From Dicyema japonicum (Eukaryota > Animalia > Dicyemida), in assembly GCA_011109175.1 (NCBI GenBank), contig RDEW01000004.1, positions 1,140,030-1,204,029 of the forward strand: 64,000 nt of DNA. Reading direction: 5' to 3'. Positions 1-54,365 of the stretch are shown piece by piece. The translations under genes and the position numbers were made by a program. Below the pieces are notes generated by a model. It ran no database searches. It worked only from the letters and a program-made list of their open reading frames with translations, and was not told the origin of the DNA. How positions within the stretch are numbered: the first letter of the stretch is position 1; every line of letters begins with the position of its first letter.

Positions 1-950
1 TAGTTGATGAAAAGGTTGTACTAATTGGTTTAGTAGGAATAATAATAGTAGTAATTGTTGAAGGGGTTGTACTTGTAGTAAGAGGAATAGTAGTAGTAAT
101 TGTAGAAGAGGCTCTATGGATGGTAGTACTGGTTGTTGATGGAGTTGTAGTATTTGTATAAGTAGGAATAGTAGAACTGGTTATTAAAGTAGTTGTCGTA
201 GTATTTATCGTTGTAGTGGGAGGAACAGTAGAATTTGTTATTAAAGGAGTTGTCGTAGTATTTATTGTTGTAGTGGGAGGTACAGTAGAATTTGTTATTA
301 AAGGAGTTGTCGTAGTGTTTATTGTTGTAGTGGGAGGTACAGTAGAATTTGTTATTAAAGGAGTTGTCGTAGTATTTATTGTTGTAGTGGGAGGAATAGT
401 AGAATTTGTTATTAAAGGAGTTGTCGTAGTATTTATCGTTGTAGTGGGAGGAACAGTAGAATTTGTTATTAAAGGAGTTGTCGTAGTATTTATAGTTGTA
501 GTGGGAGGAACAGTAGAATTTGTTATTAAAGGAGTTGTCGTAGTATTTATCGTTGTAGTGGGAGGAACAGTAGAATTTGTTATTAAAGGAGTTGTCGTAG
601 TGTTTATAGTTGTAGTGGAGGAAGTAGAATTAGTTGTGTAGTTATGTAGAGGAATAGAGGTTATTAAGTTGTCGTAGTGTTTAGTTGTAGTGGAAGGAAT
701 AGAAGTATTGTAGAGATGGGGTAGTAGTGGTTGTGTAGAAGTAGTAGTCGCAGTTGTTTTAGGTGTAGTAGTGGTTGTTGTAGTAGTCTTAGTAGTAGTC
801 ATTGTGGTCGTAGTTGTAGTATAATCGCTCTTACAATGATAGAAACAGTTAGTCATAACACAATTCGAACCTCCTTCAATTTCAATGGCCATCATTAATA
901 TAACCTAAATTTAGAATTTTGAAACTTACTCCAATATTTATCGCAAACAT
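1..950 (-). CDS. Secreted/surface Thr-rich mucin-like protein, paralog A (3' end runs off the window)
   Basis: ATG at 950; 25-nt GT-AG intron 905-929. Spliced product MFAINIG|VILMMAIEIEGGSNCVMTNCFYHCKSDYTTTT... has a signal-peptide-like start, a Cys motif, then Thr/Pro repeats open to position 1. Homologous to paralogs B and C. Confidence 0.8.
180..630 (-). repeat. 57-bp coding tandem repeat (~7-8 copies) encoding PPTTTINTTTTPLITNSTV
   Basis: Period of 57 is visible as a 3-nt shift per 60-nt line. Each unit carries two N-glycosylation sequons (NTT, NST). Confidence 0.9.
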
Positions 951-1189
951 TTGATGATTTGTCAGATTTATTTTTTTATTATTTTTTATGCTCGCCTTTA
1001 AAAATAGTATTTATTTTTTTATCATGTAAAAAATTAAATTAAAAATTTATCGATTATTGTTTTACTTATTTAATCAAAAAAACTAAAGTAACTGTGGACG
1101 CCTAATTGCCGCTTTTCTTTTCTTAATTTTAATGGCGATTCTTGTCCCCTAAATAAATACAACACAAAATAAAAAAGATGTTAAGCTTA

Positions 1190-1740
1190 ACTAGATATTC
1201 GATCCCGGTCTTCCTTACAATAAAAGAAATGAATTTCGATGGGCATACGACTGTTGTAATCACCGGTAATAAATTACATCATGGTGGAGAGGTGAAAGTC
1301 TGTGGAGTGAAAGAGATGAAAGAATGTTGGATTCAAAAAAGTTGACGTGGCATAAATCGCTTTAAAGGCTATTTTTTCCGAAATCTTTGATACCACCAAT
1401 ACGGAAATACATTGACGGGTAAGTTCAGATGCTTTGCAGTAAGTATTCTGATTACTGCATTATGCAGCAATTAGCTATTTTTGATTCCAAAGAGATAATA
1501 TATGTTGCTTTCGTGGAACAAAATATTGGAGTTAGAGCTTTCTAAGAGCACTCCTGAGTGTTGTTGTTCCAAAGATTATCTAAGGACTCGCTTATCTATG
1601 CTGTTGACATCTTCCATATATGAGTGGAGAGTGTTATAGGTATTTTTGTTTCCCTAGGCCATCTAGGCTCAATTTGGGGGTGAAGGATCTCTGGGAACGA
1701 CCTACCTTTGCGGCGTACATCTTTAGTGTTAATGAAGCCT
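1190..1740 (-). mobile_element. Heavily decayed 3' fragment of the Ingi/Vingi-like LINE
   Basis: Ends in ...GACCGGGATCG, resembling the ACCGGGATCAC 3' end of other copies. Only weak residual peptide similarity. Confidence 0.3.
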
Positions 1741-1862
1741 AGATAAAAATAATCTGATTTGAAACCGCACATTTAAGATTATAGTAGTATTTTCTGTTTC
1801 TCATTAATAAAATCCTTTTTTGTAAAATTAAAAAAAAAGTTTTGTAATGCCCCATTTAACTT

Positions 1863-2481
1863 TTATTGACTTTTTATCCTTGAAACAACCAACTGTTTTG
1901 ACTTTTTAACTGTGAACATGGTTATTCCAGCTAAAACAAATAAAAAGGCTAAAACACTCCATACTAAAATAAACATTCTACAATTAAATGAAAAATTCAC
2001 ATTTTATTGGCATCTAAATTTTAGTATAATTTCTACTTTTCGATATTCCGGGAGTTTTGCTACTTTTGAGTTTTGTAGTGAAACCTGAAAAAATCCTAGT
2101 TAAGGTTGTATTGATTGTTGATTGAGTGGTTGTAGTATTTGCCGTTGTAGTGCGAAGAATAGTAGTTATTGTAGTGGACGGTGTAGTCATTGTTGTTGGA
2201 GTAGTAGTGGTTGTAGTAGGAGGAATAGTGGTAGTCATTGTTGGAGTAGTAGTGGTTGTAGTAGGAAAAATAGTGGTAGTCATTGTTGTTGGAGTAGTAG
2301 TGGTTGTAGTAGGAGGAACAGTTGTAGTTGTTGTGGTCGTGGTTGTAGTATAATCGTTATGACAAGTATATAACAAGTATCCCATTGGCAATTACTCGAA
2401 CCTCCTTTAATTTCAATTGCCATCATTAAAAAAACCTAAAATTTGAATTTTTACATTTACCCCTATATTTATTGTAAACAT
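1863..2481 (-). CDS. Type I transmembrane mucin-like protein, paralog B
   Basis: ATG 2481; introns 2436-2460 (25 nt), 2014-2036 (23 nt) and 1978-2000 (23 nt) flank a 13-nt micro-exon (2001-2013). Spliced C-terminus NANKIMFILVWSVLAFLFVLAGITMFTVKK is TM-like. One -1 frameshift near 2375 in the Cys motif. Confidence 0.75.
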
Positions 2482-2847
2482 TAATAAATTTGTCAAATTT
2501 ATTATTATTATTTTTTCATGTTTGCCATTAAAAATATAATTTAATTGGTTATTATCTAAAAATAATAATAAATAATTGTCACAAGATATTGTAAAAACAC
2601 GGTTTTTTCGGAGACAGTAAACTTTTTTTTTAATTTTTTAAAACAAAATAAAATAAACTAAAGGTCATATAGCGGTCGCCTGACTGTTTGCCTATTCTTT
2701 CTCAGGATGGCAAGCGTGAGTCTCTCAAATTGCCAGCAGCCCTCACGAGGTTCTTATTTTTTATATAAATTATATAAATAAATTTATTTGTATAGCATAA
2801 ATTGTATTAATTTTTATTAAATAATTGTAAAAATTAATTAATTCTAA

Positions 2848-3279
2848 CGTGGTTATGGAAGTAGCCTTCTGGCTTAATGACATCAGATATAAAGTTTGTG
2901 GGTTTGAATCCGAAAGATTGAGTTTTCTGCGAAAATCAATTCTTGTCAAACAGATCCCACCCGTGAGGCGACGAGTCCTTCTGGCACGACACAGTTGTTA
3001 AAAGGGATCTTCCTACCTTTCTCCCTGACCAAACCCTCTGATGAAGATTGTATTATGAAAACTATTCCGCTAAAGAATGAAGTGATGTCCGCGACGGTAG
3101 GACGTGGGACAAAAATGGAAGAGGGCGGACCTACATCTCCACCTCTTTGGAAGCGGAAGCCTTTAATGAAGTATTAGAAGATGGATTTGGTGTTCTCCCA
3201 AAGGTCCTTTCATTGGATTAGTTAGTTATGACTGTTTGTGCTGGCTTACAATGGTAAGCCTGGGGTTAATAATAATAAT
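2848..3279 (+). mobile_element. tRNA-headed SINE, family S1 (full-length copy)
   Basis: B-box-like GGTTTGAATCC at 2901-2911. Body nearly identical to 46992-47332. Ends in hairpin GGCTTAC-AATG-GTAAGCC, then TGGGGTT(AAT)n. Confidence 0.75.
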
Positions 3280-3299
3280 GGTGATAAAAGTTCGGAAAT

Positions 3300-3400
3300 C
3301 ACCCCATTTTGTTAACTGCATACAACCAATACATTGAGCCATGTATTTCTTATGCATGCGCCATATGGGGTCTATTCATTTCCTGGACAACTTTTTTGAG
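3300..3400 (+). mobile_element. Short LINE ORF remnant
   Basis: YNQYIEPCISYACAIWG matches the post-RT motif in other copies (e.g. 24818-25039). Confidence 0.6.
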
Positions 3401-5078
3401 GTTACTCTTCCAATGGTGGTTTTTGTTAACTCTTCCAATGTCTGGAGATCAGCCGTTTTTTAACTTTCAAATTGGGTTCACTTTTCCAATACCACACAAG
3501 ACTATTAAACTTTCCGCATGTGCCAAGAGTAATAAGTTAGTGGTATCCAACCGGTGGACCTTGGACCGGTGCCGGTCTGTATCTGCAGTAAAATTGTCTA
3601 ACACTTACCGGTTTGCGACAACTAAAAGGTTGGGAACCACTGTGCTATGAAAACAAAGAAAAATCCGAGTTTATCTCTATTCGGAAAAAGTGGTTTGTCT
3701 TAATTGACATTAACAGAGCCAAATTTACGAACTTCAAATAAAAGTCCCCACCATAATACATGAAGAACTTTAAATTTCGACCATCACAAAAAATTGTAAC
3801 TCCATCATATGAGATTTTCTTGTTTTTGGATCCCATCAGTGGAACAGATGTCCTAATCCTAGCGACCATGCCTCCATATTAATCAACAAAAGTGAAAGCT
3901 TCCAACACTTGATTTTCCATTAGCTTCGCCTCCGTCACAGAGGCTTTCTATGTCTTTTCCTTAGGATCTGGCATTGGTTAGCAATATTTTCAGTCATTGT
4001 GTTACTTTCCTCTGTCATGGTTTATTTAGAACCAGAGCCAACGATTCAACTAAACCCAGTTTGGTATTCTATCACTCTTTACTAAGACCTCTTTTTATCA
4101 ACATGATAATTCAACCTCTTGAAGAGGACCAGTCCCCAGCTTAGAATTGATTCCAAAACTATAATTTAAATCTAATTTGAATTACTTTTTGAAATCTTCT
4201 GATTAGGTTCCTACGTGATCCCTAAGATTGATATCAAAAGGTCATTTTCACCTATTTTATTATCCCGTTGCCTTATGCAGAAAATTAATGACTTCAGAAG
4301 CTCTTCGTGTCAGAGTTTATTGCCCTTAATAATAGAAGAGTATAGCAAAATCCAGAAAAGCACATAGATGCATGAGATCGTCGGAAATTCGCCGAACGAT
4401 GTAGGGATGATATTTAGGGAGGCCGGGATCAACATTTTCATCCCAATGTCGACTGAGAGTATAAGAGTCCTCCTATTGTCAAAACGAACAGATCAGGTCT
4501 ATTAAAATTAATAATTATTCATCGACTCGGATCCCCGACTTATGCACCACAACAGATTGTATACATTCTCAGTTTCTCATATTTTTATTATAAACATTCG
4601 TATAACGTAAAATTATATGAAATTTCTCCAATTGCGTATAGACTTTCTCCAATATTTCTGAGATGACGTAGAAGGTAACTTAATCGAAGATTATCAATAT
4701 TTATTGCAGACGGTCTACAACTCCTTAGACTCATCTTATCCAAACAAAAACATTATCAACAAATCAGAGATATGAGTTTTGTCAGGCTCTCCGGTTAAGG
4801 AAAGGATTCGGAAGTCTAACAGTTCTTTAATGCCGAACATCCCTTGGTCCACTGAGCCTATTTATCATTGTTTTCTCTATTGAGTTCATTCTCGGGTAGT
4901 TCTAAAGGCAATGTTCCACCACGATAAGCAGAAACAATGGTGCTAATCGCCACAAGTCCTTGTATCCCTAAGTTCAATGGTAATAGTTTGTGCGCACAAA
5001 AATTAGAAATTAAATTTGAAGGATTACATGTTAGTTAATAATCAGTTAGTGAGTGTGTTAAGTTTAGTAATGCAACCC

Positions 5079-5624
5079 TCAAACTGCTATGGATTTTGTA
5101 GGAGTCTTGAAAAAGCCAACGATAAACTTTCCAATTGTGAATACGAATATTGAAGCGAGAACAACTAAAACGAGTATGAAAATCAGTAATGTATAAATCA
5201 TTCTAAGATTAAATGGAAATTCACTTTTTGTTAGATATTTCGACAGCTAAATTTTAATACAAATTATACCTTTCAATTTGTCCGGAGTTGGGATATTTTT
5301 GAAAATTGTAGCGAATCCGGAAAAAATCGTAGTTGGGGTAGTAGTGGTTGTTGTTGTCGTAGTAGTAGTTGTTGTAGTTGTGGTTGTGGAGGGAGTTGTT
5401 GTTGTAGTGGAAGGAGTTGTTGTGGTCCTTGTAGTAGGAGGAGTTGTTGTGGTCCTTTTAGTGGGAGGAATTGTCCTACGTGTGGTAGTTGGATCGTCTT
5501 TACAATGATAGAACAATCTCCCCATATGGCATCTATCACCTGAACCTCCTTTAATGTCAATTACCATCATTAATAAAATCTAAAATTGAATTTTGACATT
5601 TACCAATATATTCATTGTAAACAT
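5079..5624 (-). CDS. Type I transmembrane mucin-like protein, paralog C
   Basis: ATG 5624; introns 5580-5603 (24 nt), 5247-5269 (23 nt) and 5203-5224 (22 nt) flank a 22-nt micro-exon (5225-5246). Spliced C-terminus AVEISNKKMIYTLLIFILVLVVLASIFVFTIGK. A possible further 22-nt intron after the TM would move the stop to 5087. Confidence 0.8.
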
Positions 5625-8099
5625 TTTATTATTTTTCAGATTCTTTTTTTATTATTTTGTATGTTTGCCAATAAAAATATAATTTAATTAAATTAATATG
5701 TAGAAAAATAATTAAAATAAAAATATAATGATTAAAGTTTGATTCGACAATTTTTTGGAATATCCGAGATAAAAAAATTATCTTGTAAACAATAACTCTC
5801 AAGGTTGAAAGACTTAGTTTTTTTATTCAAGACTTGAATATAATCTCCCTAGTAACCATTCTAGAGTATATGAAGACATTTTGTGCCAAGTTATAAGAAT
5901 GCGTAGCACGAAGATAACCTAAGAAGTCAATGAGATGCCTATAATTCCACTGTTGAATGGAATTTAAAGTAAATTTGTTTTTAAACTCGCTAGCTTTTTG
6001 TATAATAATTGCCCAATTAACACTATTGAGAACATTCGAATTTAATAGATTACTAATTCCCTTGTTTCTACCAAGAAAGTCGGTATTTGCTTTATTTTGG
6101 CACGGCAAGATTGGAATCTAGATATTACCCATTCTATGCTCCCGTATTTTAAAACCTAAGGATTCCAATGTCCCCTATCAAAATGAAATTTCGTATCAGT
6201 CTCAAAGAAATAATTTTGATTTAGCTAAGTCATTGCAACAGAGTTACGTCACCAGCTTAACCTTTTGATTATTTAACCACTTGGCTAACTAATTTAGTGA
6301 TTCAGTATTTTCACATTTTATGTAATTTAATAATCGCCAATTGAATGTCTGGTTCACTTGCACATGCGACGAGGAATTCTTAAGTAATCTAAGTAATCGG
6401 ATTTCTACACAAAAAGAGATCCTCTCTAGTGCTGATGGCTATTTAAGCAAATCTAGCTCGCCATGCTGAGAGGGTTGCTGTATGACGTTTTTGTTTATTC
6501 CGTAATCTGTATATTAATAATTATTTAATATAATATTTATTTATTAATACAAAGTATTTTATTGAATATTTTCAAATAAATAGCGTGTACCATATGCGTA
6601 CGTGGGAGTCTGAATATGTCTTCAAGTATTGAAAATCTGACAACCTTAGTTTACGATGGAGTGATGTTGTTTTGGCTTCCTACTGTAAATATCCTAATCC
6701 ATTTTCCTCAGTGAATATAGCCTCGATTGACGTCTTGGAAAGCGAAGTTAAAGTTTCAAAGGGGATCCCTTTATTGAATCGACATCGATTCATAAACATG
6801 GCCTACAATATTCCGCGAATTTTAACTTCAGTGATTTCCCTCAACGTCGCCTTTATCCACGAAAAATCTGTTCTGGACATGAAAAATCAAGAATTTAGTA
6901 TGGTCTCTGAAAATGTAGTCACGTCAATTTATACTTAGGACAGGTGAATCTCCGCAGTGTTATCCATGTGCAAGAAAAAATGGTCTACAAACCCCACAAA
7001 ACTAATCCAGAACAGTGAACCCATGTGGTTATCTGATTTAGGACTATTTTGACTCAGATGGCCTCAGTGAGAATATCAGGAATTCCCTTTGCTTCATTTT
7101 TTGAAAAGTTTGTGGTGGACAATATCGAGAAAAATAGCTCCCTGGTATTGTTTATGCTTATTTTTAGGGGAGAAAGGCAATTAATTGGAAGGTTGAGAAT
7201 AGCCATGATTAGTTGAATTATATATTATTTTAATATTTGATGACATAATTATTTTGTTTTTAATTTTATATTAATAATCTAGAAATTTATAGATCTTTTA
7301 CTCACATGTAGCCATCGGTTTCCTTCACTTAAAGGATTGGGAGTAAGTGATCTGTTAGTTAGTGATTAGGCTGATTATTGGAGGGTTTACTTGCTTCCCC
7401 ACTGCATTCATATGTTCAAGCTATAATCTTCCCTTAAACCAAAGGACGTTTTTTTGTGTTTGATATAACCTGTGTTGATACATTGTCCTTAACGAATATG
7501 ATTTTATCTGTAATACTTATAACGGAGATTCTAGGCTTTGTTTTTTTATTACCTGTCAAAAAGAAATACCATACTTAACTATGGTCTATTTTCTATTAAA
7601 GACATTTAAATAATATTTTACAAGACCTAGTGTTGGTTCTTAGTCTCATAACAACATTATTAGTAGTTAAACACGTGGTTGTTAGTGTTGTCATTTAGTT
7701 TATTAGTTACTAGAATTATTGTCAATACTAATCATTAGGTCTTGAGTTTCCATAGATATTCTTTGAGTTTCAAATCGATTAATAGCGTACTTTAATTTAT
7801 ATATTCCAACACAAGGATTAACTGAATAAAATAACTACAATTAATACTTCTCCTCCACAATACTTTCCCCAAGTCTCTAAATAATCTTTTGATTTTGGAA
7901 AAAGAGTTGTTGCCTATGAAACTATAGGTTATAGTGAATACACAAATGTCTTAGTTCTGTTCATTCTAATATCATTCAGAAGAATGATGTTGGGGGATTA
8001 AATAATCAGAGATAGAAGACGCTTAAAATGATTAAGGATCGTGGGGAAATTCTATGTCCTACATGTGGTATTCTGGTTCTGACCAAATCCATTCTTAAT

Positions 8100-12570: not shown

Positions 12571-12854
12571 AGAAGTGCTCTCCAAATTCAATTGGACATG
12601 GAGAGGCATGCCCAAATGTGTAGTATGTGAATATTAGTCATAAACTATATTCAAAAGACCTGGATGTTCGTTCAGGCCATGGTCGAAGGTATAAATGTCC
12701 AAACATGACTTTCTTAGACCCTTCAATGGTGCACTCAGTAATCAGGAAAATGAATAACTCGTCGTCCCGCGCGGTTAGATGACATCTGAATCCTTCCGCG
12801 ACGGTAATTAGACATTAATGATTACGATAGATGACTGCAATTGCTACTTAATTT

Positions 12855-13170
12855 ATATTATTTATTAACCCCGGGATCACCTAAAAAGAAAGACAAAGTA
12901 AAGTCAACTAATTAGGTGATCCCAGTTCCTCGCAACCAAACGTTCCATCCTAAGCCTGTGCGTCTCCATTGTTCCCACTGTCGAACGGAAATGCTTCTTC
13001 GATCCTTGCAGAAGAAGCCGATTGGGAAAGGAAATTTCTTAGCCAACCGATTTTCTTTTGCGTGGAACAGTGAGAGGCTTAGTGGGTGTCCATCTTCCTC
13101 GCAAATGTGGAGAAATCCAGAATCACATCTACGAGTTGTAGATTCTGTCAGTAGGGGAGGTACTTAATTT
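12855..13170 (-). mobile_element. 3' stub of Ingi/Vingi-like LINE with intact terminal hairpin
   Basis: Homologous to 17020-17330. 12-bp stem GGGATCACCTAA/TTAGGTGATCCC (12873-12884, 12912-12923) followed on the minus strand by GGGGTTAATAA. Confidence 0.85.
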
Positions 13171-16990: not shown

Positions 16991-17019
16991 TCGGTTTAAG
17001 TTTTTTTATTTTATTTATT

Positions 17020-20005
17020 TTAATAACCCCGGGAACACCGAGAAAGAAAGACAAAAGAGTCAAACAGTTAGGTGATCCCAGTCCTCGCAATCACTTGTGC
17101 CATTCGACGTCTGTGATCTTCCATCGTCCCCACTACTTTCCGGAAGAGCCTTCTCTCGGTCTTGCAGAGGAATCCGATCGGGGAGGGGAATTTCTTATCC
17201 AATCGGTTTTCTCTTGCCATGGGAAGGATCAGGCGAAGCGGATTTCCATCTTCCTCACAGACGCGAAGAAATCCGGAGCCACGACTACGGATCTTAGCTT
17301 CCATGAGTAGTGGGTCGACTGTTGATCCATTACGTGGGCAAAGCATACTGATTGTTTTCCGGTATATCGAGTTGATTCTTTGGACCATAGACTCCGATAG
17401 CCCGAATCTCCATGCAACGGAGGCATACTCAATGGCAGGCGCGATTGTTTGTTGGTAGAGGATAGAAACGGAAAAGTCCATGTTCCTCGTGGTCCTCCGA
17501 ACAAGGGCGCGTATAACGTTAACTTTCTGGAGGCCCCTGGTGATCATGTCTGTTGCGTGGGAGTTGAATTGAGAAGACTGTCGTACTTGACTCCAAGGAC
17601 AGTGGGGGACCTTGTCACTGGAATCCGAGTGGGACCAATGAAAAGACTCGGTTCATCCTTGGAACGACGGTCCGACGTGAATGTGGAACAGATAGACTTG
17701 GTTGCAGAAATCGTTAGTCGATTGCCAACAATCCAATCGTGGAGAGTGTTCAATTTTGTCTGAGTTTTAAGGGATGCGACTTGCGTCGAGCGGTTCCGTA
17801 TTGCAATGACTACATCGTCTGCGTAGGATAATAGCAGGGAATCTTCGTCTCCATCATTAGGTAGGTCGTGTAGGAATAGGTTGAATAGAATTGGTGAAAG
17901 TGGAGACCCCTGGGGTACCCCGTTCGGTAGTAATCGTGATCTAGATCTGAGATCACCACTGACTACTCTTCCACGTCTTCCAGACAAAAAGTTGGCCAGC
18001 CATAATTTCACATTCGGACGAATATTAGTAGAAAATATTTTTCCAACCAGGATTTTCCTCGAAACAGTGTCAAAGGCTTTGTTGATGTCAATAGAAACCA
18101 AGATTGTGCGTTTGTGAGGCGGAGGATGGGTGTTAAAACCGTCGGCAATGAACTGCGATAAAGTTGCCAAGTATGTAGCGGTGGACCTACCGCGGAGGAA
18201 ACCATGTTGAAATATAGGACGCGGAAGATACGGAATAATGACTGATAATACAAGTTTCTCCATAATTTTTGACAGTGTGCTGGTAACGGAAATAGGCCTG
18301 TAGGATGCAGGTTCTGTCTCTGGTTTCCCAGCCTTCAATATCGGTCTGATGATAGAATTCTTCCAAATCTTGGGAATAATATTATAGTTAATGGACAGTT
18401 GTATATATGCGTGAGGTAGCCAATTGCGTAGTGGCTTAGGTGTTTTAGGTGAATAGAAGATACTTTGTCAGGCCCGCACGCCCGTGAGCTCTTTAATCTG
18501 GTGATCACATCCAAGACTTGGTCATCTGTGAATAGTTCGTGTAAGGTTCCTTCTTCGGTTTATGGGCACGCACCTTAATGTCCAGGTGTTTCGAGAATGG
18601 TTTGAAGCTAATTCCAGCGTAATGTTTCATAAGGTGTTAGGGTAGGTGGCATAAGTGTTCAGGAGAAGACTTTCCGGTTCCGTCTGCATCATCCAGCTCC
18701 GACTTGACTTGTTTAAGAGTTTTCCAGAAATGTCGGGATGTACTTTTCCTGTCGAGGTGGTTAACTAGATGCTGCCATCTCTTGTCCTTGTGTTCTTTTA
18801 TGCTCTGACAGATCTTTTATTCAGTTGTCTGAGGGCTGTCAAAGACTTCATGTCCAACAGATGGCATCTCTTCAGCCGGTCTCTTTGTTTTATAAGACTT
18901 ATTGTATAAGAGCTGAGGGTAGGAATAAACTTCTTGTATGACGATATAGGAATAAAAATATGGTCAGCTTTCTGAATGGCAGCGCTGATAATTTCTGCGG
19001 CCTCGTCAATAGAGCGTATTGGGAAGGATAATCTGGGCCAAGAATTTATCCACAAGGTTACTGAAACCAGACCAGTCAACCTTCGTATAATCCTTGAATC
19101 TTTTTGATTCCGCCGGACCGTCTCCTGTATCGTCGAAGACCTCTCAATTTTAGAAATTGGATTGTGGTCACTGAAGCCGTAAAAGACGTTCCAGGAAATG
19201 AGTCCAGCCAGAGAAGGTGAGCATAGTGTTAAGTCGGGGATGTGCAGCTATCAGTCATCCTTAATGGGGTCCTCGTATGTGAGTTAGGGTCGTTCATTAT
19301 AATCAGGTCAGGGAGATAATTTGCAATGAGTTCTCCTCAGTTGTCAGAGGATTGGGAAGTGAACCAAACTGGATGTCGTGCAGTAAGATCCCCACATAAC
19401 AGTAGATTTTTCAATGTTGAAATGCGTGATAAATCAGGGGTGTAAGATGACGGACACAATCCTTGTGGAGCAATATATAAATTAGCCAAATGGATCCAAA
19501 AGGACGGGAATAACTCCATTTTGACAGTAATCTGCTCCAAACTCTTATCGGAGCCAAGAAGCTCTGAAATTCGTTGAGTTGTATCCTAAAAGGAATATCG
19601 TTCTTTATAATAGTAAGTAGTCCTCCTCCGCGTCCTTCCTGACGATCTTTACGGATCACTGTGTATCCGGAAAAGAGGGTGTTGGTATGGAGGGAGATAG
19701 CTTGGACTCCTGTATTAAAGCGAGGTCAGCCTCATTTTCGCGGAGGAGTGCCCGGAGTTCAAAGATTTTCTTCCTGATCCCATTCGTATTCAGTTGTATA
19801 ATTGTAAAACCTCTCCATGGACCAGGATTGGTTTCGACGTCCCCACATAGAAGAATCAAAAGTCTGAATAAATGGGGACACCAGACAGGGTCGAAGACAC
19901 AGGAGATGAGAGGACCACCGGACGGTGGGGAGAAGCTGTTGGCTCTTTGCGTTCCATTTTAGAATGGGTGATACCGTTTCTGGTGAGCCACATGACACCA
20001 CGCTA
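17020..20005 (-). mobile_element. Near full-length (~3 kb) single-ORF APE-RT non-LTR retrotransposon, Ingi/Vingi-like (I group), frameshifted
   Basis: Order is 5' structured leader, LLCGDVETNPGP (19818-19859), APE (QLNTNGIRKK, ALIQESKL, CGDL), RT (YRPISVT, QHGFLRGRST, DINKAFDTV, GVPQGSPLSP, YADD), C-terminus ...ARTGIT*, then hairpin + GGGGTTATTAA tail. No ORF1 is seen. Clade assignment is inferred from layout. Confidence 0.85.
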
Positions 20006-20034
20006 ACATTTTTTTTTTATATTTTGAAAATAAT

Positions 20035-20350
20035 CGCGTGGCTCATGTGGTGTTTCGTGGCTAATTGATTGAAGTTTCTGTTTTGTTCATCTGTTCCTCC
20101 TCTCTTCCTATTAGAGTGGCGCCATGTGATCCATCTGTCTAGGTGGCGCCCAGTGCCAGGCCGGCACGAAAAAGGATCATTTTCTCTCCCCACTCCACTG
20201 GAAGGGTTTCCACAACTGCAACTATGGACGTCTTTTACCCTTTATGTTGATTCCGGATGGACTCTGTTTTTGTAGAGTGGAAACTGGATACACTTAATTA
20301 GTTGTTTACTTTAACTTCTTTCTCGTGTATCCGGGGTTAATAAATAAAAA
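20035..20350 (+). mobile_element. Short non-coding non-autonomous retroelement, family N (copy N1)
   Basis: 5' CGCGTGGCTCATGTGG resembles the LINE 5' end. Internal pseudoknot fold at 20117-20180. 3' GGATACAC...GTGTATCC-GGGGTTAATAA tail closely matches the LINE tail at 12862-12923. Confidence 0.8.
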
Positions 20351-20379
20351 TAATAAATAAATCAAAAACAGTTCGTAAA

Positions 20380-21135
20380 GCGAAAAAAAGGAAGTCGTTT
20401 CAGACAATTTTGGTTATTCAGTAAATTAACTAGGTATAACTTTGGCCAGAAAGCTACAGTCAAGAAATGTCCCGCTTGTGGAATGTTATTCGATCCCTCC
20501 CTTTCTGAGGATTTCGAGAGTCACAGATAGTATAATAGTGCTCAATCCAGAGTTATGCGATTCAATCCGGTACCATTTTAACCTAAGACCTGTCAAATTA
20601 CGTGAAAAGTCAACTCAACGTAATCATCGGCTTCGTGGATGGGTTCATTTTGCAAATCGACAAGACCAGCACCAAAAGTATCCTTGAAAAGGTACTCACT
20701 TAGATACACGCAGTTAAAACTAGTCCTCCAAGTAGTCAACTCAGAATTAGGGATATTTCACTCACCATCACAGTCCCATATAAGTCTTTGCTATTTATCA
20801 CGTGCTCAGATGAATTGGCGGGATACTGCTGTGTGGAATTTGTATCAGAGGTCCTTCATTTATTTCTTACTGGCAGATCAGGTTGTTGAGTTCATCGGGG
20901 TGGCTGCAGAGTAGTGAAACTGTCTACTCCTGTCCCTGTGAGCTGTGTGATAAGCAGAATATGGGTGGGTCAGGACTACAGGAGGAAAAAAATTGGGAAG
21001 AAGCTGCTAGATTGTGCTAAGGCCCTGGAATCTGCTAGTAAAAGTGAGATCACCTTCACTGACCCGACTGGATGTGGATTGGAATTTATTAGGTCATATA
21101 TGGAAAGTTACTCCATTTATGTTAAAAATATTTAA
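20380..21135 (+). CDS. ESCO: Cohesin acetyltransferase ECO1/ESCO-like
   Basis: FGQK...CPACGMLF zinc finger; VLQVVNSELG; C-terminal ISRIWV...RRKKIGKKLLD...ITFTDPTGCGLEF GNAT motifs. Exon structure only partly resolved; in-frame TAG in the finger. Confidence 0.8.
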
Positions 21136-21654
21136 CTTTGTGTTAATTTAATTTTTTGTATTCAGTAGTTACTATTCCCAGATTTCTTTAATGACATTGA
21201 CCCTAACCACACATAATGAATTTTTCTCTCTTGACTTGTTTTTGAAATTGGTAGCCATTAGCCCTTACGAAGAAAATCAATAGACATTAGCAGTTGTAAA
21301 GATGTATACGAAACTTGAGACATTTGTCAACTTGGCAGCATCCTGATCTACGTTATCATTTATTTAGTTAAATGCTCTCCCATTAATACTTAGGGTTCTT
21401 CACTATCCGTACTACTCCTTGTAACCTTCCTCTTCTCACGTCTCCGTTGTATATCGAGGAATCCATGCATAAAGATCTCTGTTTAGTGTCCGAAGCGAGT
21501 CCTCTGAAGTTGAAAGTTGCAATTGTAAACAGACTAAGAGTATAATAAAAACATAGACTTTATTGAAAAGGTCAACCACTCAACCTTATCAAATCAGTTA
21601 AATGGGAGTGAAATACTGAGCTGAAAATTTTTTTTGATAAACAATTTTATTTTA

Positions 21655-21952
21655 TTAAACAATAGAAGTCAGGTAGTTGCCGCCCTCACTGCGTGGCTGT
21701 TCCCTCTCAAAATTGCGAGCGAAATTCGCTCAAATAGCCAGCGGCGTTCACGGAGATCTCCAGTGCATGAGGTGATCCGGTTTCCAAGACGTCCGAAAAA
21801 CTCGAGTGTAGAGGGTGAGTAGGATCCGGAAGTCTCCATAGCAAGGGGAACAAATTTGAGATCATCGGGAAGGTCGACGTATTTAACGAGTTTGGCCTTC
21901 TCCGCCTTTACGGATGCTGAACAGGCCCTTGTAGCACTCTCGCTGAAGATTA
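21655..21952 (-). mobile_element. CRE-clade (RLE) non-LTR retrotransposon, 5'-truncated 3' end
   Basis: Translates openly as AEKAKLVKYVDL...FVPLAMETSG...GDLRERRWLFERISLAILRGNSHAV, the CRE restriction-like endonuclease C-terminus. Confidence 0.8.
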
Positions 21953-31600: not shown

Positions 31601-32544
31601 GATTCTTCGACATTTCGTAAGTAAGTATTAACCTCCCCATCACCTCATTGTCGTGGCTTCCTTTTTGGGAAATATTTTTATGTCGTCCATAAACAGCAAA
31701 TGGATTGCTGTGTAAAAGATCTTTGGTAGTGGTTACCCATAACCAATTTAAATATCTTAAATTTAATATCCTCTTCAGAGGATCACAAGTACATATATTT
31801 GCGGTGACAATAATCGTCTTTCAGTATCCCCCTCTCATTTTTATTTTCCCAATTTATTTTTGATTAAAATTCACCTTAATTTTCCACTTTGTGACCATGT
31901 TTTTCATGAAATTCACGATCCAGTAAAAAGTCAAGTGTCATCTAGAATCCGATACTGGAAGTCACCGAGTCAAACCTATCTTCACATCCAACTAATTCTG
32001 CTAGTTAATGCGTTGGTTAAGTGCTACCTTTTCCATAAATTTTTGCACATTTGCTGAGTTCCCAATTGATCGTCACTGATCATATGGTAGCCTCAATATA
32101 GTCTGCCGATTGTCTATTCACACACTTGGTAACCAACTTTTACAAATTGGGAATCCAAGAAATTGGTCTCAAGTCAGTAGGTGCATGCACAAGTAATCTC
32201 CCTGTATAACCACTCACATTGAGTTTACGTTCTGCTTATTATTTAGACAACTTCCCATAAATTATTGAAGTGAATCTTTTAAGAAAGAAATTTTTAATTA
32301 GTAGTTTTTAAAAGTATCTTCTCCCCCGATTACTTTCTTGTTCATAAAAATGTGTTCCACCGCTTTTTGTCTTTTCGAATTCCCGCAAAAAAACTCAATA
32401 GAAGGGTCCTTCTTAAACAAATTCCACAACCTGAGTTTTGTATGTCTTATAAAATCAATGACTTTTGTCAATATGGACACAAAAAATAATTTTTTGAGAT
32501 TTGAAGGAGACAATCCCAACGACAGAATTATAAGCCCCGTGATA

Positions 32545-32835
32545 CCAATCTGGTGCCATGTTGCTACTTTATTGAAGATTTCTGTTTGTTTTGTTAGTTC
32601 CTCCTCTCTCCTCTTCTATTAGATTGGTGTCATGTAACTAAGGAGGATCATATGATCTCCCTCACTTCACATGAGGGGTTTCCACATATGCAAGGAATGA
32701 ACATCTTTTACCTTTTATGCTGGTTATGGATTTACTTGTGTGATATTGGAAGGACTGTTTCTGTGAGAGTGGGAACCGGATACACTTAATTAGTTGTTTA
32801 CTGTTAACTCCTGTCTCGGTGGGGGTTAATAATAA
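32545..32835 (+). mobile_element. Family N non-autonomous element (copy N2; pseudoknot region deleted)
   Basis: Colinear with N1 (TTGAAG.TTTCTG, TCCTCCTCTCT, GGGTTTCCACA, GGATACACTTAATTAGTTGTTTACT, GGGGTTAATAA). Confidence 0.8.
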
Positions 32836-32899
32836 TATTCTACAAAATATTGCAGGAGCAAAAATGTTATTTCAATCGGAATCGTTTATGTACAATCTC

Positions 32900-33309: not shown

Positions 33310-34435
33310 GGTTCCCATTCAAAATGGCCTCTTTCAAAATGGCCTCCATTCAAAATGGCCTCCAATAAAATTTCTCAGGTTTTGGATACGTTCATCAATA
33401 GACATCACGAGATATTTTACCAAGGTCCTCGACATCTTTAGGTAAAAGAGTCATCTTTTTATATCTTATAAAAATTGATTTTTCCAAGGTCCTCGACATC
33501 TTTAGGTGAAAAAGTCATCTTTTTTAAATCTTATAAAAATTGATTTTAAGGGGTCCTATGGGTAAGTGGAACAATTTACCAAGGTCCTCGACATCTTTAG
33601 GTAAAAAAGTCATCTTTTTTAAATCTTATAAAAATTGATTTTACCAAGGTCCTCGACATCTTTAGGTGAAAAAGTCATCTTTTTTAAATCTTATAAAAAT
33701 TGATTTTAACGGGTCCTATGGGTAAGTGGAACAATTTACCAAGGTCCTCGACATCTTTAGGTGAAAAAGTCATCTTTTTTAAATCTTATAAAAATTGATT
33801 TTAAGAGGTCCTATGGGTAAGTGGAACAATTTACCAAGGTCCTCGACATCTTTAGGTAAACATTTATTTTTTTAAATATTTTTATTTAACTTTAAAATGA
33901 AAGATTTATTTTCAAAAGGAAAAAAAGAAAATAATTATAAATGTAATAGAATATATCGGATCCAAGTTAAGTAAACATTTGTTCTTAAACAAATCTCAAT
34001 GTATTCTCAGATAAAGCAATATATTTAGTTTTTCTAAGAATTTTTTCTCCATTTTGTAATCTTAAGAATTTTATCATTATGCTTTCTTCTTTTATCAATT
34101 TCTTAACAAAATTTCTTGGAATCTTGTTTAGTGTCCAAATGTACTTCTAAAAACGTTGTGCCAGCTTCCAATTGAGATATGGACCTTGGTAAAATGTTCC
34201 ACTTACCCATAGGACCAGTTAAAATCAATTTTTATAAGATTTAAAAAGATGATTTTTTACCTAAAGATGTCGAGGACCTTGGCAAAATCAATTTTTATAA
34301 GATTTAAAAAAATGACTTTTTTACCTAAAGATGTCGTTTCGCTAAAATCTCGTGATGTTTATTGATGAACTTATCCAAAACCTGAAAAAATTAATTGGAG
34401 GCCATTTTGAATGGAGGCCATTTTGAATGGACACG
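33310..34435. mobile_element. Non-autonomous foldback-type DNA transposon with modular inverted arms
   Basis: AGATTTAC duplicated at 33302-33309 and 34436-34443. ~100-bp terminal inverted repeats. The left arm has 65-bp units at 33419, 33483, 33578, 33643, 33738, 33833 with interspersed 30-bp units; the same units are inverted at 34180-34340. Confidence 0.85.
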
Positions 34436-34949: not shown

Positions 34950-35560
34950 ATAAAACAACATATTTATTAACTCCAGTACAAGCAGTCAGACTAATTGATC
35001 CAAGGAAGTAATCTAAGGGGGAACGCCTGCTTGATTAATTTCCATCCTTCAATAGTCCACTACAGGCTTCCGCTTCCTAAAAGGGATGAAGAAGAGGTTC
35101 ACTCTTTTCCATTTTCATCAAATATCCTACCATCGCAAACATTACTTCATTCTAAGCCGGAAAAGTTTTTTTTATAATGGTAATCTTCAGGGAGAAGGTA
35201 AGAAGATCCCTTTGTTGTTTAACAGGTGGGAGGCGGTTGACCAGAATTGACCTGTATTGTAAAGTCCATCTTTCGGGTTGAATCCAGCAACAGTCCGATG
35301 TCATCAGAGGTTATGTTCAGCCAACTTAGCCAAGAAGAGATATATCACTTCAAACAAAGATTACTTTCATTCTCTGCTGTTATGTTAACCATTCCAATGG
35401 TGTAGTGAGAAGAAATGATCATTTTCGCGCCATGCTGCCACTGACGACAATGGGGACAGCTTGGTCATATGACGTCATTATATAGAATAAGAAAGGGAGA
35501 ACAAAGAAAGAAACGACAGATTAGCAGTCAGTAGGTAGAATAGAACACAAAAACACTATT
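34950..35560 (-). mobile_element. Family N non-autonomous element (copy N5, diverged)
   Basis: TGACGTCATATGACC...GTCGTCAG...CGAAAATGATCAT fold remnant (35415-35477); tail GGATCAATTAG...GGAGTTAATAAAT. Confidence 0.55.
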
Positions 35561-44455: not shown

Positions 44456-46003
44456 CCCAATACTCAAGAACAACAAAGCCTCCTCCTTGCCCTCTTCGTT
44501 CAGGCCAATTTCCTTAACATCTGTTGTCTCAAAAATCCTCGAAAGGATCATTCTTAACGAAATCACTCCCTACCTCGACCTCTCCGATTCATAACATGGT
44601 TTCCGTCCTTTACACTCGACCACCACGCACTTACTGACACTAACCCAATACATCTCCAACGGTTTCAACAACTGCAAACCCCCGGAACGAACTGTCTTGG
44701 CCTCTATTGACCTAACTAAAGCTTTCGACAGAATCTCCCGTGTGGTCCTCTGCAACAAGATCTATTCTACAAATATTCCCTCTGTATGGAAGTCATGGCT
44801 CACAAATTTCCTCTCGGGAAGACTGGGCCATACGTGTCTATATTCAAATATATCAAGATATCGACTCCTACCAAACGGTGTTCCCCAGGGATCAGTCCTT
44901 TCACCCTCACTTTTCAACCCTTTACGTCAAAGACATCCCAACAACCCAAAATACGTTACTATTGACATATGCGGATGATCTAGTAATCGCATCCAGGAGT
45001 GGCGATGTTCGACTGGCCACCGAAAAAGTGCAGTACCACCTGAACTTGCTATCCGACTGGATGAACTTAAACTGGATGAGTGTTTCCACCTCGAAGTCAT
45101 CAGCTACCCTGTTCACAACCGATCGAAGACAATTCAACCTAAACCCCACACTCTCGTTGGGAGACGAACCACTCCCCTTAAATAAATACCCGAAGATCCT
45201 TGGAGTTGTCTTCGATCCTTCACTCTGTTTCAACAGACAAGTGGAGGAAGTAATGACAAAAGCCAAGCGGAAACTTAACATATTACGGGCAGTAGCTGGC
45301 CACTCAAACGGTCAGCAAAAAGAAAACTTAACTCTTCTCTACAAACAGTTCATCAGGACTACACTCAACTACGCCTCACCAAGTTGGGCCCCCTCAATCT
45401 CCTTGTCCCTTTCTCAAGAACTGCAGAAAGTGCAAAACTCGGCGCTGAGAATAATAACTGGCTGCTTAAAGTCAACCCCCACCGACCATTTACATTGGGA
45501 GTCGAAAATCCTCCCGCTCTATGACCACCTGGAAATGCGTAATTTACAATTCCTACGGCAGTCGTTCGACCCGAATCACCCAGTTCACGCTCTGCTAAGT
45601 AACAATAACCGCAGATACATACGCAGGACCCTCTTTGACCTACAAAGAGCCTTGTCGAAGATCACCCCCCTCAAGAAGACTCAACTTGGACCCGCCGAAT
45701 CCATGATTTCATCTCGACACGGGCCATTAGGACACTTCAATATAACAAAGTCTTGGAGCGCTTCCCCCCTGATATCAGTCCAACGGAACAATCGCTCCCG
45801 AGGAAGATCAGAATCGGACTGGCTCGCCTACGATGTGGACACCACCCTTTCCTGGCTGGCAGAGTAGTTCGGGACCTTTTTCCCTGCCCTGGACCACCGG
45901 ATGCAAAAGTCGAGGATCTCTGGGAGCGGCCTGTCCGGACTGCACGCTCTCTGATGGTCGCCGGCTTCCCACTTGCTGGCGAAGCCGGGGTTAATAATTT
46001 AAT
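44456..46003 (+). mobile_element. 5'-truncated Ingi/Vingi-like LINE with 15-bp TSD
   Basis: FRPISLT, HGFRPLHST, DLTKAFD, GVPQGSVLSP, YADDL, LYKQFIRTTLNYASPSW. Tail CCGGCTTC..GAAGCCGG-GGTTAATAA. TTGTTGTGAGTACTA at 44441-44455 and 46004-46018. Confidence 0.9.
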
Positions 46004-46018
46004 TTGTTGTGAGTACTA

Positions 46019-50789: not shown

Positions 50790-51300
50790 GTCCATTAGTT
50801 AGTTAAATGAACTTATGAATACAAAGGGTTTAGTCTGTGTCGTACTCTGCTATCCTTTTTATATTTTCTTTCATATAGAGTAGACAGAGTTTGATAAGAC
50901 AGGGAATAGAGAAGTGTCAACCTCACAATTAAAGCAGAGAGTAGTCTCAGAAGACATCTACACGGACTATCTATTAACCCAGTGAACAACAACTCCACCC
51001 GAACAACAGTCATCAAACGTACTGCACTTGTCTGTACCTAGCTCACTAACAAACTGACGCATACTCGTTCTATCATCTCAGTAATGATCTTTCTGCCGGT
51101 TTACCTACAGAACCGGTTTACAAATCTACTTCTACCAGGAACAAAATTGTGGGAACTCTTCAAGAAATAATCCAGCCAAGTGGGAGACATCTAATGATTT
51201 TTGATGCCGTTCTGAACTATTTGAGACAAGTGGATCACATGACGTCACGGTAACGAAAAAAAGGAGAGAGGAAACTGAAAAAAGGAGGGAAACCCTTCAA
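50790..51300 (-). mobile_element. Family N non-autonomous element (copy N4, diverged)
   Basis: GTGACGTCATGTGATCCACTTGTCTCA...GGCATCAAAAATCAT aligns to N1 20116-20180. Confidence 0.55.
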
Positions 51301-52959: not shown

Positions 52960-54365
52960 TTTGTATCTTATACAAAACGAAATAAAAATAAAGCCAAAAC
53001 TCAGAATCGTCTAGTTTTCCGAGATACTAGTAGTAGTGGCTGTTAAGGCTTGAATGTTGAGGATTTTTTGTTTGTTCGTCCAGGACAGATTAATTCCCCA
53101 TGACATACAGGCATAGCTGACAGATGGCTCAATGAATTGTTTGTACAACAATTTCAAAACTGGGAAAGGGGTTTTAATGCCACCGAAAATGGTTTTGATT
53201 ATCCCTAGCTTTCTTGAGCAGCTTCCAGAGACAGCGTCGACGTGGGATGAAAAGGACATGTGTGTGTCGAAAGTGATCCCCAAGATTTTCAGTTTCTTCG
53301 TGAAAGGTATTTTTGTCTGGTTGATAAATATATCCACTGTCATTTGTCCAAGTCGTTTGTCTGAGGTAAATAAGGACAAAAATTTTTCAGTAGATATATC
53401 AAGCCTGTTATAATTTAGCCAAATTTGAATCTTGTGAAGGTATTCTTGTGGTCTTTCTGATGCCTTTGGGATATCTTGATTGCGGGATTCGATTAATAGG
53501 TCATCAGCATATAATAGGAAGTAGTCGTCTTTATTATCGGGTTGTGGTAAACGGAAAATAACCCCTTCTGAATCCATGTTGCGAAAATAAAAAAGGAAAA
53601 GACGGGTTTATAAGATAAGAATCAATTTTTCCAATAATTTTGGTCGAAATGATGCAAGATTGTTTTTTGGCTTCCCAGACTAAAGGATTGGGCGTATATA
53701 GGACAGTTTCCAAATAGTTGGAATTGTATTCATGTTTATTGAATTGTTGAAAACCACTGTGATTGCATCATTCCCAATAGGTCAAAGGTGCTTTAGTAAC
53801 AGGGATATAATCAGGCCCACATGAGAAAAAAAATTCATCTTTTTCAAACCCTCACTGACATCTGAATGTGAGATAAAGTTATTCGGATAAAGAAGGTCCA
53901 TCCATTTTCCTGAAAGTTTTCTCTTCGGTCTCATTGAGGATAAAGAAGGCCCATCCATTTTCCTGAAAGTTTTGTGGCTTAAACTGTTTGAGCAGTCCAG
54001 ACGAATGCAGTAGAATCCTAGAAGATGCGGGGTAGATGATGATGGAGTGAGTTTGTTTTCTTGAAGTAAAGTCATGTCAATGTTCTGTTTTTTAATGAAA
54101 GACTGTAGTTCGAGAATTTTGCTTTTGATTCCGTTGATGTTTATCTGCAGAATAAGAGTGGACCTGGATTAAGTTCAATGTCACCAACGAGAAAAATTAT
54201 CAGTAACCCATTCAGACGAGGAGGATTAAGAAAGGGAAGAGGCTGTCGTCCGAAAAGTCTTTCTTTGAATGGGAGGTAGTTAATGGTCCTTTTTCGCAGT
54301 GCATTAAGTGCACCGTGAGCGCCTCCATAACTTTCATAACTGGTAGACTACATAACGCACGTTTT
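52960..54365 (-). mobile_element. Internally deleted Ingi/Vingi-like element retaining 5' fold, 2A motif, APE start and RT pieces
   Basis: Fold at 54284-54360; LIIFLVGDIELNPGP (54159-54206); LQININGIKSK; QHGFRRG joined to YADD; shared 3' junction with 9050. Confidence 0.8.

Follow-up and report, generated by a model that had tools for sequence, protein, structure and literature searches.

Classical short interspersed nuclear elements (SINEs) combine heads of tRNA, 5S or 7SL type with 3′ tails derived from long interspersed nuclear elements (LINEs); their 3′ recognition is stringent. Ribozymes of the hepatitis delta virus (HDV) type at the 5′ ends of LINEs are thought to serve the release of the element RNA, and non-autonomous elements that carry them have been documented in trypanosomatids and, rarely, in the ribosomal DNA (rDNA) of flies. 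In trypanosomes, the Pr77 hallmark unites an internal promoter with the HDV-like ribozyme L1TcRz, forming a dual element (PMC3383444) that is present in NARTc/L1Tc, RIME/ingi and SIDER1/2 (PMC3185411, PMC3383444, PMC4035085). The 5′ junction or target site duplication (TSD) of R2, L1Tc/NARTc and Perere-3 lies at the cleavage site, or cleavage takes place upstream in host sequence (PMC3774820, PMC4035085, PMC8501958); in R2 and Perere-3, cleavage can remove the cap yet allow translation (PMC3774820, PMC8501958). Here we describe SINE-a, a retroelement family of the dicyemid Dicyema japonicum, represented by the full-length copy N1 in a stretch of 64,000 nt, hereafter the window (GenBank assembly GCA_011109175.1, contig RDEW01000004.1, positions 1,140,030 to 1,204,029, forward strand). 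The genome of this species has been described as 67.5 Mb in 377 scaffolds, with 48.9% repeats and a mean intron of 38 bp, in a paper that does not mention SINEs or ribozymes (PMC6736024). The assembly contains 67,542,437 bases in 377 contigs.

SINE-a resembles NARTc, RIME and SIDER in being a short, non-coding LINE derivative that keeps the HDV-like fold of the LINE 5′ end and is dispersed at high copy number. This comparison, made in a preliminary description of the window, proved apt; the two tandem 5′ hallmarks of SIDER2 (PMC4035085) resemble the partial-plus-complete arrangement at the start of SINE-a. Unlike the trypanosomatid elements, SINE-a has a metazoan host, and there is no sequence similarity between them; promoter and ribozyme activities have been demonstrated in L1Tc/NARTc, whereas those of SINE-a are putative. 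The short internally deleted elements (SIDEs) of Drosophila R2, and the R2/R1 hybrid SIDEs, likewise have a ribozyme-type head of a LINE 5′ end that an internal deletion has brought next to a LINE 3′ end (PMC3414825). R2 SIDEs are rare and rDNA-specific, and they depend on being cleaved out of the 28S co-transcript, either at the junction or upstream of it (PMC3414825), whereas SINE-a is dispersed, counts about 2,000 copies, has an extra 5′ module and shows 5′ ends unrelated to the cut site. With the displaced-cleavage ribozymes of R2 (PMC3774820) and the twister-variant ribozymes of Schistosoma Perere-3 (PMC8501958), it shares the location of a fold in the 5′ untranslated region (UTR) of an animal element lacking long terminal repeats (non-LTR element). 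A non-autonomous LINE derivative with an HDV-like fold and a LINE 3′ end is already known from NARTc/RIME/SIDER and R2 SIDEs (PMC4035085, PMC3414825). Within the literature searched, what appears to be new is a metazoan SINE superfamily, abundant and dispersed, that uses a LINE 5′ UTR with its fold as head, the internal position of this fold behind a duplicated 5′ start, and the clear uncoupling of fold conservation from 5′-end formation.

Taken together, the evidence presented below makes it likely that SINE-a is a LINE-derived SINE in which a selected HDV-like fold does not define the 5′ ends of the copies, and in which the head acts as a control module.

Abundance and mobility of SINE-a

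A genome search with window 20035–20350 returned 1,896 first-look candidates, and the 40 SINE-a copies that were scored showed 90–94% identity over the full query length. Shorter probes gave 591 matches at ≤3 mismatches (38 nt from the 3′ half of the fold) and 436 exact matches (a 21-mer spanning P2 to P3′), with no match for either reversed control, and the exact 63-nt consensus fold is carried by at least 47 copies. The summed contig depth over SINE-a was ~2,000x that of the adjacent single-copy gene, a rough measure that agrees with the other counts. These depth figures derive from DNA contigs of the only four sequencing runs found for the stretch, all of one sample and none on record as RNA, placed at a 90% threshold. 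Depth was ~8-fold lower over the 5′ module of N1, which is most simply explained by the divergence of N1 from the consensus at that threshold, not by truncation or cleavage. Among the sequencing contigs placed on the window, we found no empty-site joint for N1 and no molecule starts or ends.

Many copies are flanked by clear TSDs of 9–24 bp with sharp boundaries, as in L011 (11 bp), L018 (24 bp), L025 and L056 (14 bp each), L072 (15 bp) and L087 (18 bp). These individual TSDs identify SINE-a as a mobile family. The window is full of decayed LINE fragments, and the copies could on that ground be taken for random LINE deletion debris; however, hundreds to thousands of them have both internal breakpoints as well as their ends in common, and they bear individual TSDs in different flanks, so that this explanation is already refuted and its probability is close to nil. 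SINE-a is a high-copy non-autonomous non-LTR retrotransposon with roughly 2,000 copies, which occupy about 1% of a very small (67.5 Mb) and highly reduced animal genome. The preliminary description had proposed a family of short, non-coding, non-tRNA retroelements and had set against it debris lacking shared breakpoints and TSDs. The genome-wide search with N1, through its copy number, insertion-specific TSDs and shared breakpoints, bears the proposal out and clearly contradicts the debris model.

Structure of the element

The 322-nt, non-coding SINE-a consensus spans CCGCGTGGCGCC to GGGGTTAATAAATAAAT. It was derived from two aligned sets, namely the 30 best copies with their flanks and, following the order of the contigs, 60 copies from the list of 21-mer matches; the second set is unbiased except for the requirement of that 21-mer. 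The median identity of copies to the consensus is 92%. N1 extends over window positions of about 20021–20364 on the forward strand (Table 1) and overlaps only open reading frames (ORFs) of ≤33 aa, without coding capacity. The leader (G)ATTTTGAAAATAG precedes nt 1 in at least seven SINE-a copies besides N1. In the 5′ module, nt 1–25 are a repeat of the start of the LINE, with the 5′ strands of helices P1 and P2 among them, and are followed by a pyrimidine-rich spacer; a local hairpin is predicted at nt 1–28. This module is common to SINE-a, a second family termed SINE-c, the window copies N2 and N3 and locus L106. At the other end of N1, BLAST matched window 20282–20347 to a LINE 3′ end at 12927–12858, and the length of the terminal tail differs between SINE-a copies.

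Table 1. Window coordinates of the parts of N1, of related copies and of neighbouring features
Feature	Position	Strand	Description
N1, AT-rich 5′ leader ATTTTGAAAATAA	20021–20033	+	Belongs to the inserted element, not to the target
N1, SINE 5′ module (consensus nt 1–87)	20034–20117	+	Alignment of 30 + 60 copies
N1, HDV-like nested double-pseudoknot fold (consensus nt 88–150, 63 nt)	20118–20180	+	
N1, post-fold leader and body	20181–20253	+	First part homologous to the LINE-A 5′ UTR downstream of the LINE-A fold (nhmmer, pairwise alignment)
N1, LINE 3′-end module	20254–20350	+	Last LINE codons, long-range stem GGATACAC...GTGTATCC, then CCGGGGTTAATAAATAAA
N1, A/T microsatellite-like tail continuation	20351–20364	+	Direct reading
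LINE-A copy, head-to-head with N1	17001–20012	−	Fold at 19939–19999; the stem and CCGGGGTTATTAA tail recur at its 3′ end
ESCO-type acetyltransferase gene, downstream of N1	20431–21135	+	Zinc-finger exon from about 20431; Acetyltransf_13 at 20914–21135, E 9e-16
N2, old SINE-a copy	32538–32850	+	73–76% identical; private deletion of about 37 nt of the fold; aligned over 32538–32832
N3, SINE-c copy	63670–63945	−	Same head (5′ module and fold), different 3′ end; 5′ strand of P4 deleted
N4, decayed SINE head fragment	51146–51299	−	nhmmer profile positions 38–187; fold at 51194–51246, 15.4 bits
N5, decayed SINE head fragment	35362–35517	−	nhmmer profile positions 46–203; fold at 35415–35476, 23.9 bits

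SINE-a shares with classical SINEs its short length, the absence of coding capacity, a modular head, body and LINE-matching tail, TSDs, and a 3′ stem-loop and short-repeat tail in common with the partner LINE. It differs from them in its head, which comes from a LINE 5′ UTR with an HDV-like pseudoknot and T4 runs, instead of an RNA polymerase III (Pol III) gene. Rfam searches over the whole window at the gathering score, and over 19900–20500 at E≤10, returned no match to any RNA family, tRNA, 5S, 7SL and snRNA included. Given the lack of a Pol III-gene head and the presence of TTTT runs at consensus nt 49 and 204, Pol III transcription of SINE-a is unlikely. A weak likeness to an A box and a B box at nt 6–45 was considered and rejected as a Pol III head, in view of the T4 runs, the lack of an RNA-family match and the poor preservation of the ‘B box’ in SINE-c.

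Relationship to LINEs

In nhmmer searches, SINE-a profile positions 79–175, and in some copies positions up to 255, matched LINE-A from nt 1 to about nt 177, while positions 250–320 matched LINE 3′ ends. In the consensus, nt 79 to about 190 correspond to the 5′ end of this young LINE family, and nt 225–322 align to the LINE 3′ ends at 12846–13010 and 16991–17160 through the stop codon, the stem and also the CCGGGGTTAWTAA tail. Pairwise alignment placed the last codons of the LINE and its stop codon within the 3′ module. The long-range 3′ stem is formed by GGAUACAC/GUGUAUCC in SINE-a and by GGGAUCACC/GGUGAUCCC in a LINE; as the differences between them are compensatory, the stem has been kept. 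It is followed by the CCGGGGTTAATAA tail, a motif that occurs 13 times in the window versus 4.7 expected. At 45985–46061 (+), one such tail is followed, 9 nt later, by a 5′-truncated fold of the LINE-d type, so that two elements stand tail-to-head.

The 5′ start of SINE-a also points to a LINE. Its nt 1–25 and the leader (G)ATTTTGAAAATAG that often precedes them are similar to the outermost 5′ end of LINE-A, (GA)TTTTGAAAATGTTAGCGTGGTGTCATGTGG, and many LINE-A 5′ ends are preceded by (GA)TTTTGAAA, like the leader of N1. Because its two ends match LINE 5′ and 3′ ends, SINE-a is a LINE derivative that arose by internal deletion, and its 5′ start has undergone duplication. The duplication consists of a partial first copy, limited to the 5′ strands of P1 and P2, a pyrimidine-rich spacer and a complete second copy with the fold. 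The LINE-derived SINE system put forward in the preliminary description is, thus, supported by homology at both LINE ends.

LINE-A, a young family with 105 candidates that are 94–98% identical, is likely the autonomous partner type of SINE-a. The copy that lies head-to-head with N1 shows the order 5′ ATG, fold, 2A motif, APE and RT; Pfam searches on the LINE detected only RVT_1 and a weak Exo_endo_phos match. The presence of a 2A motif in the partner LINE is a further likeness to L1Tc. The ATG of the LINE-A ORF lies at the first conserved bases of the element (ATGTTAGCG), as seen in L092:1211–1810 (−) and in window 19815–20009 (−), and in L092 the frame stays open through the whole HDV-like fold and a 2A motif (GDVETNPGP) as far as the endonuclease domain. 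In LINE-A, the fold thus forms part of the coding sequence and lies upstream of the StopGo site. LINE-A copies retain ATGTTAGCGT upstream of G1 of the fold, that is, at least 10 nt upstream of the predicted cut, and since the ATG is located there, cleavage would remove the AUG. Five LINE-A copies (L095, L106, L119, L097 and L107) have unusual 5′ junction structures, with a short direct duplication about 40 nt upstream of nt 1 that repeats either the element’s own first 9–14 nt or the flank.

A conserved HDV-like fold

The fold of N1 was outlined in the preliminary description, and window 20118–20180 reads exactly as given there: GGCGCC-AT-GTGATCC-ATC-TGTCTA-GGT-GGCGCC-CA-GTGCC/AGGCC/GGCAC-GAAAAA-GGATCAT. 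The pairs are 20118–20123/20145–20150 for P1, 20126–20132/20174–20180 for P2, 20133–20135/20142–20144 for P3 and 20154–20157/20163–20166 for P4, with the candidate catalytic C at 20167. The SINE-a consensus begins with P1 (GGCGUC), J1/2 (AU), P2 (GUGAUCC), P3 (ACC), L3 (UGUCUA) and P3′ (GGU), and continues with P1′, which is GACGCC in the major form and GGCGCC in the minor one. After P1′ follow CA, which possibly forms P1.1 with the UG of L3, then G, P4 (UGCC), the loop AGGCC, GGCA, C, GAAAAA and P2′ (GGAUCAU). This topology, with P1 and P2 crossing and P3 and P4 nested, is that of HDV-like ribozymes. A J4/2 of the C-GAA type is found in HDV and CPEB3, and SINE-a has a J4/2 of this type. The C and A-rich run before P2′ noted earlier recur, as C and then (G)AAAA, in all lineages in which the fold is retained, an agreement that concerns the presence of the residues only. 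G1 and the U at position −1 are conserved as well.

A covariance model was built from four SINE-a copies, with only P2, P3 and P4 encoded as pairs and P1 and P1.1 excluded. In the window it detected N1 (95.8 bits), N3, the LINE-A 5′ end, N5, a LINE 5′ end at 54283–54359 and N4. Across the window and the retrieved loci, instances were found in SINE-a, SINE-c, LINE-A, LINE-B and LINE-d, and the fold is, thus, present in two SINE families and two to three LINE families. Pairs were then counted on the model alignment, to which P1 and P1.1 had been added as pseudoknot brackets. In total, 93.1% of the cells could pair, compared with 33–56% when the partners were slid by 1–3 columns; among 89 distinct rows, the paired fraction was 90.7% for P1, 93.4% for P2, 96.5% for P3 and 95.8% for P4. 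Thirteen of the 22 pairs have changed on both sides, and each of P1, P2, P3 and P4 includes such double-sided changes. Cells with a double change numbered 62 versus 10.5 in shuffles, and none of 500 shuffles reached the observed value.

The comparison between families shows the same helices built from different sequences. SINE-a forms P2 as GUGAUCC/GGAUCAU, SINE-c as UGGAUCC/GGAUCCA, LINE-d as GUGGUUC/GAACCAU and LINE-A as GUGGCUC/GAGCCA. P4 is (G)UGCC/GGCA(C) in SINE-a, AUGCC/GGCAU in SINE-c, UUCC/GGAA in LINE-A and GUGCA/UGCAC in LINE-B. At the third pair of P1, the SINEs have C-G and LINE-A has U-A; the fifth is U-A, U·G or C-G across three SINE-a subfamilies. In the unbiased sample, 27 copies carry P1 as GGCGTC/GACGCC and 12 as GGCGTC/GGCGCC, while N1 itself has GGCGCC/GGCGCC. 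The covariation proposed for N3 is real: its fold at 63836–63892 (−), scored at 28.5 bits, has P1 as GGCGUC/GACGCC and P2 as UGGAUC/GAUCCA, both truly compensatory with respect to N1. N4 and N5 are decayed, as described earlier (Table 1), and N5 shows one compensatory change (A-U) in P1. The segment GGCGCC at nt 7–12 was also considered as an alternative P1 strand and rejected; the cut would then fall at nt 6/7, which is no copy start either, and RNAfold pairs the segment locally.

These patterns bear on whether the fold matters to the SINE itself. As SINE-a is a deletion derivative of a LINE, and as single copies lose the fold by varied private deletions without obvious consequence, the fold could be a passenger that is functional only in the LINE, for instance in ORF translation, and neutral for the SINE. 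However, SINE-a and SINE-c have a common SINE-specific 5′ module and, therefore, a common SINE ancestor, and compensatory changes at two pairs of P2 and one pair of P4 distinguish the two, while every helix remains intact. The three forms of the fifth P1 pair in the SINE-a subfamilies, all of which preserve pairing, and the retention of the head across different 3′ ends also speak against a passenger, which we consider improbable. The fold has been kept by selection in both SINE and LINE lineages.

SINE-c and other copies

N1 to N5 had been presented as one family. This does not hold for N3, which belongs to SINE-c together with copies in L024, L040 and L029. SINE-c shares with SINE-a the 5′ module and the fold (profile positions of about 2–161) and differs in its body and 3′ end. 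The 5′ module and fold, thus, form a conserved ‘head’ that has been joined to at least two 3′ ends, a situation comparable to the R2/R1 hybrid SIDEs, in which a ribozyme head stands on the 3′ end of another element (PMC3414825). Two composites were observed: in L040:358–921, SINE-a nt 1–202 are followed by the head and body of SINE-c, and in L038:415–540, the SINE-a fold directly precedes the 3′ half of the SINE-c fold. Their structure suggests template switching or recombination between SINE RNAs.

N2 has lost part of the fold, as already noticed, and its junction sequence occurs once in the genome. A junction-pattern search of the genome gave no sign of an amplified fold-less subfamily, in a test that is weak for old copies (12 matches versus 19 for the control); each SINE-related match had a different private deletion. 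A genome search with N2 yielded several collinear matches at 70–77% identity, whose lengths do not decide for or against loss of the fold. A LINE-type tail had been attributed to N1, N2 and N5. N1 has CCGGGGTTAATAA at 20331–20343 and N2 has it with two mismatches at 32820–32832, whereas the tail of N5 was not confirmed, its only candidate (34964–34976, two mismatches) lying about 400 nt past the aligned part.

5′ ends of the copies and the predicted cut

An active ribozyme of the HDV type would cut before G88, behind the conserved 5′ module. The 5′ starts of the 60 unbiased copies fall mainly at nt 1–3 (44 copies), with seven at nt 4–30, eight at nt 31–84 and one at nt 94; none was found at nt 85–91. 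An RNA cut at G88 keeps the 3′ recognition end and should, therefore, leave truncated copies, yet none of the 60 is truncated at that position, which sets an upper bound of roughly 5%. Clear TSDs end 0–31 nt upstream of nt 1, that is, 87–118 nt upstream of the predicted cut, and the gap between the TSD and nt 1 is filled by AT-rich leaders. Such leaders lie inside the TSD in L022, L087, L072, L084, L056 and other copies, and they are common within subfamilies, as with ...TGTGAG before the CCGTGTGG subfamily (L012, L013 and L014). Since they are enclosed by TSDs and shared by subfamily, the leaders are inherited, and the RNA that was copied had its start at least about 100 nt upstream of the predicted cut. 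The 5′ ends of the element are not set by the fold, and uncleaved RNA is the template. With none of the 60 copies starting at the predicted cut, any cleavage would lie off the replicative path.

This distribution separates SINE-a from the described ribozyme-bearing elements. The fold of L1Tc/NARTc covers nt 1–77 with the cut at +1, whereas the complete fold of SINE-a starts at nt 88 and copies never begin there. Similarly, the 5′ junction or TSD of R2 and Perere-3 correlates with the cleavage position, whereas the predicted cut of SINE-a is internal and the junctions ignore it. A pseudoknot on the SINE had been suggested in analogy to the ribozyme-bearing RIME and NARTc; the covarying nested pseudoknot of HDV type stands, and its use for 5′-end release of the R2/L1Tc type is opposed by the 5′ ends of the copies.

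The fold could still be an active HDV-like ribozyme that cuts the SINE RNA out of longer co-transcripts, yielding the retrotransposition template as in R2, L1Tc/NARTc and Perere-3. It has all the helices of the HDV type with a C-GAAAA J4/2 and a conserved U at −1, it is homologous to a fold at LINE 5′ ends, and the systems described so far have their TSDs or junctions directly at the site of cleavage (PMC8501958, PMC3774820, PMC4035085). The positions of the starts and TSDs, the lack of the truncated copies expected from a cut RNA with a 3′ tail, and the retention in LINE-A copies of the bases upstream of the cut, including the ORF ATG, all contradict such a role, which is, in our judgement, quite improbable. 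As the fold sits 88 nt within the element and the replicative RNA bypasses it, its conservation is separated from 5′-end processing, and SINE-a offers a natural setting in which to test what else has been proposed for such folds: a part in translation initiation, in promoter duality or in protein binding.

Proposed mechanism

SINE-a comprises a heritable AT-rich leader, the 5′ module, the LINE 5′ UTR with the 63-nt fold, and the last 70–95 nt of a LINE, this 3′ end consisting of terminal codons, the 3′ stem and a CCGGGGTTAATAAA(T/A)n tail. The likely course of events is as follows. The LINE reverse transcriptase would recognise the shared stem and tail, in a recognition of the stringent type, and thereby mobilise the SINE in trans. 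Copying by target-primed reverse transcription would then generate the TSDs of 9–24 bp; it is these TSDs and the shared 3′ end that point to a LINE-driven process, as described for R2 SIDEs, which are mobilised in trans in the same way (PMC3414825). The head, a LINE 5′ control region, would serve as the transcription module of the SINE and possibly as its RNA-handling module. By analogy, its role would parallel that of the dual element Pr77/L1TcRz of trypanosomes. Self-cleavage would be at most partial and off the replicative pathway.

Several observations weigh against this proposal. We infer transcription, the start site and cleavage alike, and a promoter role of the 5′ module is suggested by analogy only. 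The rows of the pairing analysis are related copies, which inflates the significance of the shuffles, and the slid controls and the family-level comparison are sounder. A G·U wobble is expected at the cleavage-site pair from HDV and CPEB3, but pair 1–48 is G-C in 67 rows and G·U in five. P1.1 is supported in SINE-a only (UG/CA, 88.7% of cells), as its register in LINE-A and SINE-c allows one pair or none, and P1 of the LINE-A consensus contains a U×U mismatch. Finally, Rfam searches of the window at the gathering score, and of 19900–20500 at E≤10, gave no match to an HDV-type family (HDV, CPEB3, drz-Agam and others), a negative that carries low weight because HDV-type families share little sequence. 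The Rfam result, the G-C cleavage pair, the restriction of P1.1 to SINE-a and the LINE-A mismatch leave the fold an unproven, putative ribozyme, and we would place the prospect that it self-cleaves in vitro slightly short of even.

A rather unlikely alternative gives the fold a non-catalytic role in cis, such as mimicry of the LINE 5′ end or the docking of ribosomes or proteins, or else a role in host regulation. The SINE RNA might imitate both ends of the LINE RNA and dock on the translation or initiation machinery, or on the nascent LINE protein. The fold might also be a conditional self-cleaving switch that host genes begin to use. If either were true, SINE-a would be an abundant metazoan SINE in which an ‘HDV-fold head’ replaces the head derived from a Pol III gene.

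The ESCO neighbour and other features of the window

The preliminary description placed N1 ~30 bp upstream of an ESCO gene in sense orientation. The gene is real and lies on the same strand, although its first recognisable exon begins about 70–80 nt after the N1 tail. No ATG occurs between N1 and this exon, so N1 may lie in the 5′ UTR, an intron or the promoter. This sense position just upstream of the exon, together with the precedent of SIDER2, an element with tandem hallmarks that targets Leishmania mRNAs to endonucleolytic decay (PMC4035085), would be compatible with N1-like copies being domesticated cis-regulators of neighbouring genes, the fold cleaving host mRNAs or UTRs. However, the case is built on a single position, and the copies look like neutrally decaying insertions with their median identity of 92% to the consensus, which makes domestication of this kind very improbable.

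Another very high-copy repeat starts downstream of the ESCO gene, at 21628–21800 (+), where the summed contig depth is 400–700x that of the gene. Window positions 1–6000 contain long arrays of GTAGTAGTGGTTGTTG-like units of 9–15 nt and a 57-nt tandem repeat, visible as nine overlapping 228-nt copies at 57-nt spacing; the minus strand of this region is probably a repetitive Thr/Asn/Tyr-rich coding region of a mucin-like family. At 33333–34427, tandem units of 95/160 nt face inverted copies of themselves, with arms that are 84–97% complementary, an arrangement suggestive of a large palindromic repeat block that has no relation to the SINE.

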